Positions 40,392-47,565 of a stretch of DNA of 64,000 nt are shown here, piece after piece (the stretch's first letter is position 1; every line of letters begins with the position of its first letter). Made by a program: the position numbers and the translations under genes. The stretch is taken from assembly GCA_019828565.1 (NCBI GenBank), contig JAHDYR010000003.1, positions 124,001-188,000 on the forward strand, in the 5' to 3' direction. Below the pieces are notes generated by a model. It saw nothing but the letters and a program-made list of their open reading frames with translations, did no database searches and was not told where the DNA came from. The DNA comes from Carpediemonas membranifera BICM (taxonomy: Eukaryota; Protista; Fornicata).

Positions 40392-40859
40392 TGCCTGTTT
40401 CCGTCGCTTCAGCTTTTTTTCTTGCAATTGATCCAACTGGATCAATCAGGTCCTACCCGTGTCTCATTATGAGCTTGGACGCGTGGGAGGAAGGCGTGTC
40501 CCCGGTTGTCTTTTTTCCGGCTCTCGATCCCTTGAAGCCTGAAGTCTGATAATTGACGAATGCTCTCAGGCTTCAAGCGCCAGAGGTGGCAATACAACGC
40601 ATTTACGTCCACCTAATCGCGTATCTACACTGTTCTCACCGTTTCGTCTGCCAGCGGCGCTCTCTGTGTGAGGCGTCGATGAGTACCGATAGCTTGATCG
40701 AGGGCCAAGTGACTGCGAGCCCGACACTGCCGTTGGGGTAGAAGTAGTTCTGCCGTTGAGGTGCTTATTGATCTAAATCATCCGTGTTGCTGAAAAAAAT
40801 GGAACGAGATCGTTTCTCGGCTAATCAGATGATGCGTGCGCTCCACACTTGATCACAAC

Positions 40860-44762: not shown

Positions 44763-44904
44763 TGTGCATTTTAGAGACCAATCATTTGATGACCATATCC
44801 GCAATGAAGTTTCAAACCCAGCTAAACGGATGTTTACAATCAGCACCTCAACGGCAGTGTCTCCACCATGGCGACCGCACTTTAAGACACAGCAATAATA
44901 TATC

Positions 44905-47247
44905 CTACTTCTTCTTCTTATGAACACGCTTCCCCCTCTTGACGCCCCGCATGGTGTAATGAACCACGGCCTTGCTGACGACGGTGGTCTGCTGCTCCTC
45001 GTCCGCCTCTTTGGCCACCTTCGCCGCGATCTTCACCCTGTTCTGAATCTCAGCGGGGATCGAATCTATTGAGATCTTCATGGGCTTGAGATTCTCCCTG
45101 AGATTGAGCTTGGTCGAGCTCTGCTCCAGCACGGCGAAGTCCTCGAGCTGGCTCTCCTTCACCAGCAGGAAGGCGTTGCCCGTCCTGCCCGCCCTCGCTG
45201 TCCGGCCGACCTTGTGGACGTACAGCTCGGGGTTGAGGGGCACGTCGCACTGGATGACGACCTCAACGAAAGGGATGTCGAGGCCTCTGCTGGCCACGTC
45301 CGTCGCAACCAGGACATTGGCTGTGCCGTTGGCGAAGCGGTTGAGGTACTCCATGCGCGTGTCTCTGTCCAGCAGGGAGCAGAGAGGCACGGCCTTCATG
45401 GACGCGCCCTCGCCCCAGAAGGCGTTGACGAGCAGCGCCACACGGATGGCCTCCTCCTTCGTCGGTACGAACACGATGTGCTTATGGCCGGCATTCAGCA
45501 TCATGAGGTGGATGAGGATCACATTTTGCAGGCCCTCGTGCTTCCGTCTGATCATTATCCTGCTCTGCCGCAGCGTGTCGACGGTGCCCTTGTCGACCTC
45601 GACGAGCGTCCACTTCTCTTCGCCAAGGACCATGTTCCTCAGATGAGCAACCTTCTCGTCGATGGTGGCGCTGAAGAGGGCGGTCACCCTGTTCTCCGAT
45701 CTCGGAATCTGGGAAATAATCTCCCGAATCTGCTCCAGGAATGACTTATTCAAAAGCTGGTCAGCCTCGTCGAGCACCAGATACTGCAGGTTGTTGAAGT
45801 ACGTCTTGATCAGAGCACCGTTGGGGCCTGTGAACTCAGCGAGCAGCTTGCCGGGCGTCGCCACGATGAAGTGCGGCCTATCCGAGAGATCAATGAAGCA
45901 TGGCTTGCCCTGGTGCTTACCGCTGGTCAGCGTCAGGACGTTCACCCGCTCCCCCACGATCCTACTGACGCTGGTGATGACCCCGGCGATCTGGGCGGCG
46001 AGCTCCTTGGTGGAGACGAGCACGAGCGAGTAGAAGCTGGGGCGGTCGGGGTTGGCGATGAACTTGTCCAGCATCGGGAGCACGAAGGCGCCGGTGTTGT
46101 GCGTGACGACCATCTCGTGGTTGATGACGAACCGTCTGTTGCCGTCGATGGTGAAGCCGTAGTAGTCGCCCACCGGCAGCCGCTCGACCGTGAAGGCCTG
46201 GCGGTGGTGGTCAGGCTGGGGGCGACTGGACTCAACCCGCAGAGGAAGGCGGGTCAGGTCGCCCGTGATCTCGCCCGACTTGGTCACCACCAGGCCCAAG
46301 GAGCGGGCCATGAAGGCGGCGTCGTCGACCAGACCCCTGGAGCCGGACTGGTAGCCGTTGGTGTCGACCAGGCCGGCCAGACACTGGCGCCGGGCCTCGG
46401 CGGGCCCGTACTTGATGGCTGGGGGAACGCGCTTGCCGTACGGACGCATGGCCTCGACGGGGTCGCGGTTGGGGAGGAGCTCCTCGATCGCCTCGAGGAC
46501 GGCGGCGGGGGTGTCCTCGGGCATGGCGTCGTCCCAGGCGGCCCCGAGCCAGGCCCCGACGACGTATGGGTGGACGGGGACGGCGGGGTCGGCCCGGCCG
46601 TGGAAGGAGAGCTCGGGGGCGATGACGGCCTTGAGCTCGGCCCGGATGGCGTCGGGGAGGGCGAAGTAGGATTCGACGGAGATGTCGAAGACGCCGTCCG
46701 CCGGGACGTTGAGGGGGTTGCCGACCACGGACGCCAGCCAGCCCTCGGCGACGGCCTTGGTGTCGAACTTCTGGGACTCGAGCTGGATGGCAGTAGCGCT
46801 GCCGTCTAGACCCAGGCTGAGTCTGTACGCCGCGGCAGCCCAGCCCTTGCCCTCGACCTCGGCCAGGCGCTGGGGCTCGGGCAGGGCTACCGTGAGAATG
46901 TGCGACATGTTGCATCTGAAGACCGCGCCGCCCTCTAGGGTGACTCTCGCCATCTCCTGGCGGCCAGTGGTGACGCTGGTGACGAGGCGGGGCGTCCCAT
47001 CGTCTCCCATGAGCCTCTCGCCAGCAACAATGTCCTGAACAGGTTTGAACTCACCATTAGCCATGAGAACAGGAGTATCTCTGGCCAGGCACTTGCCAGA
47101 GCCTGTCTTGGCGCTGCCGACCGCGTTCTCTCCCCTAGCGATGACCGGGATAACACGGCGCTGGACCTCGTATGGCTCTTTCCAGTCCATAAGAGTAACA
47201 GACTCTTCAATATCCTTTGACAGGCCGAGGTCTTGCCAAACGCCCAT
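44905..47247 (-). CDS. DEAD-box RNA helicase (Rrp3/Dbp8/Drs1-like), 780-aa precursor containing an intein; 448 aa after splicing
   Basis: Q motif, AKTGSGK|T split by the intein, TKELA, ATPGKL, DEAD, SAT, TDVASRGLD, HKVGRTARAG. Subfamily not resolved. Confidence 0.93.
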   Translation of the reverse strand: MGVWQDLGLSKDIEESVTLMDWKEPYEVQRRVIPVIARGENAVGSAKTGSGKCLARDTPVLMANGEFKPVQDIVAGERLMGDDGTPRLVTSVTTGRQEMARVTLEGGAVFRCNMSHILTVALPEPQRLAEVEGKGWAAAAYRLSLGLDGSATAIQLESQKFDTKAVAEGWLASVVGNPLNVPADGVFDISVESYFALPDAIRAELKAVIAPELSFHGRADPAVPVHPYVVGAWLGAAWDDAMPEDTPAAVLEAIEELLPNRDPVEAMRPYGKRVPPAIKYGPAEARRQCLAGLVDTNGYQSGSRGLVDDAAFMARSLGLVVTKSGEITGDLTRLPLRVESSRPQPDHHRQAFTVERLPVGDYYGFTIDGNRRFVINHEMVVTHNTGAFVLPMLDKFIANPDRPSFYSLVLVSTKELAAQIAGVITSVSRIVGERVNVLTLTSGKHQGKPCFIDLSDRPHFIVATPGKLLAEFTGPNGALIKTYFNNLQYLVLDEADQLLNKSFLEQIREIISQIPRSENRVTALFSATIDEKVAHLRNMVLGEEKWTLVEVDKGTVDTLRQSRIMIRRKHEGLQNVILIHLMMLNAGHKHIVFVPTKEEAIRVALLVNAFWGEGASMKAVPLCSLLDRDTRMEYLNRFANGTANVLVATDVASRGLDIPFVEVVIQCDVPLNPELYVHKVGRTARAGRTGNAFLLVKESQLEDFAVLEQSSTKLNLRENLKPMKISIDSIPAEIQNRVKIAAKVAKEADEEQQTTVVSKAVVHYTMRGVKRGKRVHKKKK
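46096..47091 (-). mobile_element. Intein (332 aa, VMA/Hint type) with degenerate LAGLIDADG homing endonuclease
   Basis: Starts CLARDTPVLMANG...MGDDGTPR; block B CNMSHIL; block F DYYGFTIDGN; ends VVTHN followed by Thr. Excision restores GSGKTGAF. Confidence 0.96.
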
Positions 47248-47565
47248 CGCTCGCCAGATCGCGGTTAAAGTGCGAAATGACGATAACAACCGTTGATAGC
47301 GGAGGAGAGTAGATATATGTGCAATGAAGCAACCAGCCAGTAACAACGCCTCACTGTGCTCGATTTCCAAACTAGGAGTGTCCCGGGGCCAACCCTCAAT
47401 GACGGCCAGCCCGCTCAAGAGAACTCAAGCCACGGTGCGGCGTCATCATGGCTGCCCGTTGATGACATGGGTGGCTGTATGCGCCATTCGGGTCCGTTTT
47501 AGCTTTTCGATATTTGGCCACAGCCGCGGGCTACAAAACGTGATTCAAGCAATAAGAAGAACAAA
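47248..47565. promoter_or_regulatory. Probable bidirectional promoter region
   Basis: 318 nt between divergent ATGs at 47247(-) and 47566(+); A-rich just upstream of 47566. No specific element identified. Confidence 0.45.

Follow-up and report, generated by a model that had tools for sequence, protein, structure and literature searches.

Carpediemonas membranifera BICM, a fornicate protist, carries an intein inside the Walker A motif (P-loop) of a nuclear DEAD-box helicase gene, in the 64,000-nt window analysed here (positions 124,001 to 188,000 of contig JAHDYR010000003.1, assembly GCA_019828565.1; coordinates given without a contig are those of the window, and an arrow in a motif marks an insertion point). 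The reading that we favour, with a probability of roughly 80%, is that this is a class-1 intein at the classic P-loop site of the helicase, that it excises itself from the precursor protein, that its homing endonuclease is dead, and that its history has been made by host recombination. The helicase gene and the parts of the intein lie as follows.

44905..47247, minus strand: whole coding sequence of the intein-bearing DDX47/Rrp3-like DEAD-box helicase, 780 aa plus stop (open reading frame, translation, Pfam)
47092..47247, minus strand: N-extein, 52 aa, the Q-motif region plus GSGK of Walker A (Pfam DEAD profile)
46096..47091, minus strand: intein, 332 aa, predicted class 1, PI-SceI-like, a Hint domain with a DNA-recognition-region-like insert plus a decayed LAGLIDADG domain (PF05203, phmmer, AlphaFold2, Foldseek)
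46900..46911, minus strand: block B, Asn61-Met-Ser-His64 (NMSH), with N61 and H64 invariant in 41 members
46537..46563, minus strand: first LAGLIDADG remnant, VVGAWLGAA, with Ala184 at the catalytic Asp position (aligned to prokaryotic/phage-type members and PI-SceI)
46354..46380, minus strand: second LAGLIDADG remnant, LAGLVDTNG, with Asn245 at the catalytic Asp position (aligned to LAGLIDTDG/LAGLIDSDG)
46096..46194, minus strand: blocks F and G (DYYGFTIDGNRRF ... VVTHN), the last residues being His331-Asn332 (aligned to the C-terminus of PI-SceI)
44908..46095, minus strand: C-extein, 396 aa, the rest of the DEAD domain plus Helicase_C, with the Thr+1 codon at 46093-46095 (Pfam)

The open reading frame extends over 44905-47418 on the minus strand, and its first ATG, at 47247, gives a protein of 780 aa in which a Pfam scan finds DEAD, Hom_end_hint and Helicase_C. 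When the two exteins were scanned individually (the joined extein was neither built nor searched), the N-extein matched DEAD profile positions 2-27 (E 1.7e-4) and the C-extein matched positions 28-165 (E 4e-25) as well as Helicase_C (E 2e-23). The DEAD profile thus breaks off where the N-extein ends, at position 27, and restarts at 28 with the first residue of the C-extein; it can therefore be deduced that the insert interrupts one contiguous domain. The motifs DEAD, SAT and HKVGRTARAG can be read in the translation, which has the two RecA-like domains of a DEAD-box protein, and the Walker A motif GSGKT is complete only with the intein removed. It is a reasonable inference that the precursor, with its P-loop split by 332 residues, would be inactive until spliced. 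The public gene models for this helicase and its near-copy are 780 aa each (P0001 is identical to the helicase), and these models, one of them named "hypothetical protein", would accordingly describe the precursor and not the mature helicase. Outside this organism, the best matches are DDX47/RRP3/RH10 (plant) proteins at 38-41% identity. Three other paralogues in the genome match the same set about equally well, and therefore we call the gene "DDX47/Rrp3-like" and do not claim orthology. In the genome as searched (24.24 Mb, 69 contigs; published as 24.2 Mb, 69 contigs and 57.1% GC, PMC8516963) the helicase is present in only two copies, both with the intein.

The intein comprises residues 53-384 of the protein (996 nt), begins with CLARDTPVLM and ends with VVTHN, and is flanked by GSGK before and TGAF after, which places it between the K and T of GSGK↓T. 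Residues 1-329 match positions 1-227 of the 228 in the Hom_end_hint profile PF05203 (E 1.8e-19; 71 bits against a cut-off of 32 bits). Cys1, Asn61/His64, His331-Asn332 and Thr+1 are all present in the translation, and an alignment of 41 family members shows no variation at C1, N61, H64, G312, F313, F321, H331 or N332. The invariant Cys1 speaks against class 3, which would have an atypical N-terminal residue in place of Cys1 or Ser1. Block B of PI-SceI is NATH, of the same NxxH form as NMSH here. With phmmer, the best solved relative is PI-SceI (E 7e-9), which aligns collinearly over four stretches, one at either terminus and one at each LAGLIDADG block. From the 41-row alignment, AlphaFold2 gave a model with a mean predicted local confidence (pLDDT) of 92.5 and a predicted TM-score (pTM) of 0.89. 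The Hint part is modelled with high confidence, including a segment of strands and helices at residues 74-157 that resembles the DNA-recognition region of PI-SceI, and the strands at residues 300-331 have pLDDT values of 96-98. Foldseek ranks all PI-SceI entries first (E 3.5e-20 to 3e-18; TM-score 0.67-0.73 by query), followed by Prp8 inteins and archaeal VMA inteins, with mini-inteins also matched. On these residues and profile matches, the insert is taken to be a genuine class-1 intein of the PI-SceI (Hom_end_hint) type.

A preliminary description of this DNA, made from the letters and their reading frames, had put an intein in the Walker A motif of a nuclear DEAD-box helicase at 46096-47091. 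Those boundaries are exact, and the Hint/Hom_end profile search that it had suggested gave the PF05203 match above. Its list of splicing residues (Cys1, block-B His, terminal His-Asn and Thr+1) was borne out both by the translation and by their conservation in the 41 relatives, and its arithmetic, 780 aa as 448 plus 332, is correct. The likeness that it saw to VMA-type termini extends to PI-SceI as the best match in sequence and in fold. GSGKT is uninterrupted in 11 paralogues, and a Hint domain was found in none of the 120 top outside homologues of the helicase.

The homing endonuclease of the intein, by contrast with its splicing domain, is predicted from sequence and model to be dead, with both catalytic Asp residues replaced and the DNA-binding sheets deleted. 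The first remnant aligns to GLWLGDG/GVLIGDG of the prokaryotic/phage-type members and to LLGLWIGDG of PI-SceI, with Ala184 in place of the acid, and the second has Asn245. Such substitutions in LAGLIDADG enzymes abolish cleavage. The nuclease region is ~80 residues shorter than in the prokaryotic relatives in the alignment, residues 158-299 are modelled as helices with isolated two-residue bridges and no beta sheets, and the match to PF05204 (E 0.25) is below the cut-off. An active PI-SceI-type LAGLIDADG endonuclease has both the catalytic acids and a DNA-binding beta saddle, and neither was found here. Both remnants are identical across the four near-identical copies of this intein described below, and therefore the nuclease was already dead in their common ancestor. 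In the genome as a whole, a search with the PF14528 profile gave no match and one with PF05204 gave six weak matches, and a motif scan of the genome's inteins found no member of the helicase-intein family with intact LAGLIDADG motifs.

The strongest argument for splicing comes from the second helicase copy. Its extent at this locus is:

44892..47288: segment duplicated at contig 14 (C14:61623-64020), 97% identical (own-genome DNA search, blastn)

Besides the helicase gene and its intein, this segment takes in 41 nt of upstream and about 15 nt of downstream sequence, and the flanks diverge beyond it. Retroposition was considered for a duplicate of only ~2.4 kb but found no support: weak upstream similarity continues and there is no poly(A) trace. 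Between the present copy (contig 4) and that on contig 14, the exteins differ by 24 synonymous and 4 non-synonymous changes (synonymous divergence, dS, 0.080; ratio of non-synonymous to synonymous divergence, dN/dS, 0.05; p 6e-12 against neutrality), and there are no amino-acid differences at all in the N-extein. The intein differs by 17 synonymous and 18 non-synonymous changes (dS 0.070; dN/dS 0.35) and is constrained as well (p 0.003 against neutrality). The equal dS of intein and exteins implies that the intein was duplicated together with the gene. Both copies bear the intein and are under strong purifying selection, and they must therefore supply the cell with a working P-loop; from this selection on the exteins of both copies, which is the main argument, we infer that the intein splices.

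The history of the intein can be read from its near-identical copies. It occurs, with 332 aa (330 aa in SNF2), at four places, the helicase, its contig-14 copy, an SNF2 gene (contig 17) and a signal recognition particle (SRP) receptor gene (contig 39), with 91-96.5% DNA identity among them. Between the unrelated hosts, homology stops at the intein ends, where only GGCAAG (up to TCGGCAAG) is shared upstream and only ACC or A downstream. For example, the SNF2 and SRP-receptor inteins are 96.6% identical in DNA, and their hosts share just 8 nt upstream and 1 nt downstream of them. In the helicase, the intein is made of two segments:

46897..47091, minus strand: intein nt 1-195 (codons 1-65, blocks A and B), the old "DEAD-type" segment (pairwise identity)
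46096..46896, minus strand: intein nt 196-996, the segment recently common to the four copies, a putative gene-conversion tract (pairwise identity)

The first segment is 97% identical to the contig-14 copy and 72% to the SNF2 and SRP-receptor copies, with 57/195 differences from the latter two (29%; dS about 1, dN/dS about 0.1). The second shows 23/801 differences from SNF2 (2.9%) and is equally close to the helicase's paralogue and to the other two copies (96.1-96.6% identity), in a star-like pattern. The breakpoint is best placed at nt 195 (Fisher p 4e-26), and 50 of the 51 sites at which the helicase pair is fixed against the SNF2/SRP-receptor pair lie in nt 3-192. Within each pair the 5' part differs by only 1-3%, and therefore it is not simply fast-evolving. 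The G+C content at third codon positions (GC3) is 0.68 in the 5' part, 0.65 in the N-extein and 0.92 in the 3' part; these values, from small samples, would fit a long residence of the 5' part in the helicase gene. No closer donor for the 5' 195 nt was found in the genome beyond the 72% SNF2-type sequences. Most simply, the mosaic would have arisen by ectopic gene conversion, in which two long-resident inteins that had already diverged exchanged a tract that starts at about nt 196 and stops close to the 3' end. The shared 3' part shows the same level of dS as the duplicated gene, and thus the conversion, the gene duplication and the split between the SNF2 and SRP-receptor copies would have occurred at about the same time.

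Put together, the gene would be translated as a 780-aa precursor, from which the intein would most likely be excised by Cys1 attack, trans-esterification at Thr+1 and cyclisation of Asn332; GSGK would thereby be rejoined to TGAF, and the product would be a helicase of 448 aa whose Walker A is intact. Of the intein long resident in the helicase, the first 195 nt would have been kept and the other 801 nt exchanged, through ectopic gene conversion, with the copies that are found today in SNF2 and the SRP receptor, and the gene with its intein would have been duplicated to contig 14 at about the same time (dS 0.07-0.08). As the endonuclease is dead, this recent history would have been written by host recombination, which is presumably also the means of intein spread. 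Carpediemonas is reported to be without non-homologous end joining, with alternative end joining present and homologous recombination as its main route of double-strand-break repair (PMC8516963).

The helicase intein belongs to a large family in this genome and beyond. The PF05203 profile gave 17 matches in the genome, most of them at GK↓T or GK↓S of unrelated P-loop genes. The hosts are an AAA+ ATPase, an SMC-type protein, an RNF213-like giant ATPase just beyond the window, XRCC3, a kinesin and its broken duplicate, a Ski2-type helicase, a G-alpha protein, the SNF2 helicase and the SRP receptor, so that the same family is present at K↓T/S in about a dozen functionally unrelated genes; the other matches include one at the classic VMA1 site and one in a P-type ATPase. 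In databases, >110 proteins have inteins with the same ends (GK↓C-[LH]-x-x-x-T-P-x-L-M ... T-V-T-H-N↓T/S), hosted by helicases, AAA+ proteins, terminases, DnaB, Lon and others, and relatives were found in Dysnectes, other protists, bacteria and phage-like contigs. A quick maximum-likelihood tree, with support from the SH-like approximate likelihood ratio test (SH-aLRT), groups the eukaryotic members in one clade (98), within which the inteins of Carpediemonas and Dysnectes brevis form one subclade (95) and those of other protists, including one at GK↓T of a DDX6/Dhh1-type DEAD-box helicase, a second (96). The Dysnectes kinesin intein is sister to the four-copy group of this locus (90) and the Carpediemonas kinesin intein falls in another subgroup; intein and host trees therefore disagree. 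Because one family sits at the same K↓T/S position of unrelated genes, the helicase intein is best described as a selfish passenger, and it is not a demonstrated regulator.

Several members of the family, and some inteins outside it, merit separate mention. In the V-ATPase A subunit gene (contig 13:568020-574256), an intein with a degenerate second LAGLIDADG motif occupies the classic VMA1 site (GAFG↓C); the reading frame breaks right after ...HHN, with no CGKT continuation, which points to a frameshift or an intron where the C-terminal junction should be. A P-type cation ATPase, in a minus-strand reading frame at contig 6:1602672-1608914, has a short intein (CHRAGTLVRM ... IITHN) at AY↓T of its KKSIAYTLTSNIPE motif, a non-P-loop site. 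The kinesin gene with its 399-aa intein has an inverted duplicate nearby (contig 63:831996 and 823653), in which the C-terminal part of the intein is in a different reading frame and the copy is thus broken. An intein-like reading frame at contig 15:278263-281463 (CLGTNTQVTM ... TVTHN↓STPE, then a stop) has no recognisable P-loop host and sits on a very long tree branch. Another, at contig 8:696572-699805, is the only one found in the genome with both catalytic Asp residues (GLWLGDG, LAGLLDSDG); it is of another family (CFAAGT..., +1 Cys) and lies at a non-P-loop site. In other protists, the family of the helicase intein also occupies K↓T/S at non-P-loop sites, namely HRDLK↓T/S of the protein-kinase catalytic loop (P0018, P0027, P0030, P0072, P0077, P0078) and HGPK↓S of methionine aminopeptidase (P0023, P0090), and it is found in a Dictyostelium-type STAT (P0019). 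What unites the sites of this family may be a Lys-Thr/Ser junction and not the P-loop fold.

The preliminary description had proposed that splicing could act as a conditional switch; on such a regulatory reading, redox state, metal, temperature or substrate would turn the helicase on. Conditional splicing of P-loop inteins is documented elsewhere, as in mycobacterial DnaB and archaeal RadA, every helicase copy in this genome bears the intein, and the N-part of the Hint domain is under purifying selection (dN/dS about 0.1 over 57-65 differences). However, the occupation of about a dozen unrelated genes by the same family is the pattern of a selfish element, any intein in a gene that the cell needs would show purifying selection on its splicing residues, and the N-extein translation has no Cys near the junction. 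We consider a regulatory role improbable, and the proposal finds no support here. A homing element that is still mobile is decidedly improbable in our judgement; on this reading, empty GK↓T-coding sites would be cut, and copying into them driven, either by the intein's endonuclease or by one that another intein or a virus provides in trans. The near-identical and complete copies in SNF2 and the SRP receptor do look like a recent jump to a new gene, prokaryotic/phage-type relatives retain intact LAGLIDADG motifs, and in three DEAD-box paralogues the precise target site is occupied by an intron, as though it were being protected. Against this, both catalytic Asp residues were already lost in the common ancestor of the four copies, the model lacks the beta-sheet saddle, and in the genome no member of the family has intact motifs and PF14528 is absent.

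Could the insert be inert instead? If it no longer spliced, the two helicase copies would be decaying pseudogenes or would encode an inactive protein. The dN/dS of the intein is well above that of the exteins, and other DEAD-box paralogues exist, but the exteins have accumulated 24 synonymous and just 4 non-synonymous changes since the duplication, and the helicase motifs and splicing residues are all intact in both copies, which makes this highly unlikely. Least probable of all is the removal of the 996 nt at the RNA level, in the manner of an intron and hence with no protein splicing. In its favour, three paralogues have very short introns at the very same K↓T position. However, a search up to 6 nt to each side of the junctions found no GT..AG pair that would allow in-frame excision, and the intron reading was rejected. 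The 996 nt also form an open frame that matches the full Hint profile and shows selection at the codon level, and they are kept in the public gene models, which were built with RNA-seq hints (PMC8516963). Related inteins of Dysnectes are likewise retained in proteins whose names are styled like those of translated transcript assemblies.

Some observations do weigh against parts of the self-splicing, host-recombined intein that we favour. The dN/dS of the whole intein exceeds that of the exteins (Fisher p 0.003), so constraint on it is relaxed, and in its middle part the value is 0.35-0.86, which with few changes is indistinguishable from neutral. The decayed endonuclease domain might still bind DNA. 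The direction of conversion is open to an alternative in which the 5' 195 nt were replaced from a donor that has since been lost. The host, judged by similarity, may be either an Rrp3 orthologue or a related paralogue.

The paralogues raise a further question about the insertion point. Among 14 further DEAD-box loci examined, GSGK-T is uninterrupted in 11 and broken by an intron in three. These three intein-free paralogues have GT..AG phase-0 introns of 31, 31 and 28 nt between the AAG (Lys) and ACx (Thr) codons, at the same position as the intein insertion point:

L018:753-783 (contig 19): K↓T intron, GT..AG
L024:1059-1089 (contig 16): K↓T intron, GT..AG
L025:1167-1194 (contig 54): K↓T intron, GT..AG

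In the contig-19 paralogue, the K↓T intron is the sole interruption of the reading frame. Introns at or near empty intein sites in paralogues were also described in Anaeramoeba, where it was suggested that they block homing (PMC10710043). The K↓T introns of Carpediemonas may be ancestral, protective or scars. A wider scheme, which we offer as tentative and on balance unlikely, is that inteins with dead endonucleases are sustained and moved by host recombination, with the copies in unrelated P-loop genes serving as mutual templates, as they would have done for the 801-nt tract, and with insertion at GGCAAG↓AC microhomology, and that empty or vacated K↓T sites gain tiny spliceosomal introns. If this were true, intein invasion, intein loss and intron gain would be mechanistically linked at one nucleotide position.

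Among known inteins, the best match in sequence and fold is PI-SceI, the VMA1 intein of S. cerevisiae (PDB 1VDE, 1DFA, 1LWS). The two have in common Cys1, the NxxH of block B, a Hint insert like the DNA-recognition region, collinear LAGLIDADG blocks and the terminal His-Asn, and the host of PI-SceI is also a P-loop ATPase. PI-SceI, however, is 454 aa long with an active endonuclease, whereas the helicase intein has 332 aa, with both catalytic Asp residues lost and the sheets deleted. PI-SceI is inserted three residues closer to the start of the P-loop (G↓CGKT, +1 Cys) than the helicase intein, which lies at GK↓T (+1 Thr), and overall identity is about 20%. Closer in position are the inteins at K↓T/S of P-loops, such as mycobacteriophage TerL1-a (PMC5050341, PMC4760082), which have the identical insertion point, from Lys to a Thr/Ser nucleophile; the K↓T site has been called the "classic" P-loop intein insertion (PMC5050341), and P-loop ATPases are known intein sinks (PMC4760082). 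Unlike these, the helicase intein has a nuclear eukaryotic DEAD-box gene as its host. More than 100 metagenomic inteins of helicases, AAA+ proteins, terminases, DnaB and Lon are homologous to it at 25-40% identity and have the same termini. The bacterial, archaeal and phage P-loop inteins mostly keep a full LAGLIDADG domain, whereas in the eukaryotic clade block B is followed by an additional segment and the nuclease region has shrunk.

The nearest precedent for the organism is Anaeramoeba, another metamonad, in which related inteins are reported to have moved between P-loops of non-homologous proteins by non-allelic spread within the genome (PMC10710043). Cluster 1 of Anaeramoeba resembles the present case in having a metamonad host with many nuclear inteins in P-loops of unrelated proteins. 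It differs in that the Anaeramoeba P-loop cluster is described there as class 3, with atypical N-terminal residues, whereas the helicase intein is predicted to be class 1, with Cys1. Evidence of mosaics or gene conversion is absent from the sections of that paper that were consulted, and the word "DEAD" does not occur in the main text of the paper. The nearest precedent for the host gene is the intein of a DDX6/Dhh1-type helicase (P0020/P0241, GCA_041442895.1), of the same family, with 31% identity over the full length, the GK↓T site and a decayed nuclease region. The host is a different helicase orthologue in a different organism, and the intein falls in the sister eukaryote clade; it is known as a database entry, and our literature search found no paper on it. 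A search of the literature for inteins in Carpediemonas, Dysnectes, Fornicata, Kipferlia or a nuclear DEAD-box gene likewise found no relevant paper.

It follows from these two precedents, the "classic" K↓T and the DDX6/Dhh1-type intein at the same GK↓T, that the insertion site, which the preliminary description had left open as possibly unreported, is not new in kind. The helicase is a new nuclear host with an intein at a classic site, and the element is of a known kind, that of P-loop inteins with non-allelic spread in a metamonad. The usual nuclear hosts that the same description had named, Prp8, VMA1 and RNA polymerases, agree with those in the published surveys, and no nuclear DEAD-box host is listed in the 2018 eukaryotic survey. 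Its further statement that inteins are rare in eukaryotes stands for eukaryotes in general but fails for this genome, given its 17 PF05203 matches.

Inteins are scarce in nuclear genomes, and the Anaeramoeba account gives four as the previous maximum in a eukaryote outside Anaeramoeba (PMC10710043), a number exceeded by the at least 17 Hint matches in Carpediemonas membranifera. This points to Carpediemonas membranifera as a second intein-rich eukaryote, with a different (class 1) family that targets P-loops. The locus itself is a datable record, in that it combines a sharp breakpoint, an equal dS for conversion and duplication, and an endonuclease that would already have been dead. It suggests that intein DNA can be exchanged between non-allelic copies without a nuclease of its own, which bears on how inteins reach new genes.

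Two short repeats were found at the edges of the helicase gene. A 61-nt piece at 47225-47285, made up of 38 nt upstream and the first 23 nt of the coding sequence, has a 98% match at contig 4:744030-744090, which is 570 kb away on the same contig and outside any recognisable helicase gene. Just 3' of the stop codon, at 44805-44891, is a sequence of 65-110 nt that gave no match to tRNA or Rfam families. It recurs at >30 places in the genome with 70-98% identity, and an inverted copy lies 4 kb off, at 40723-40792.

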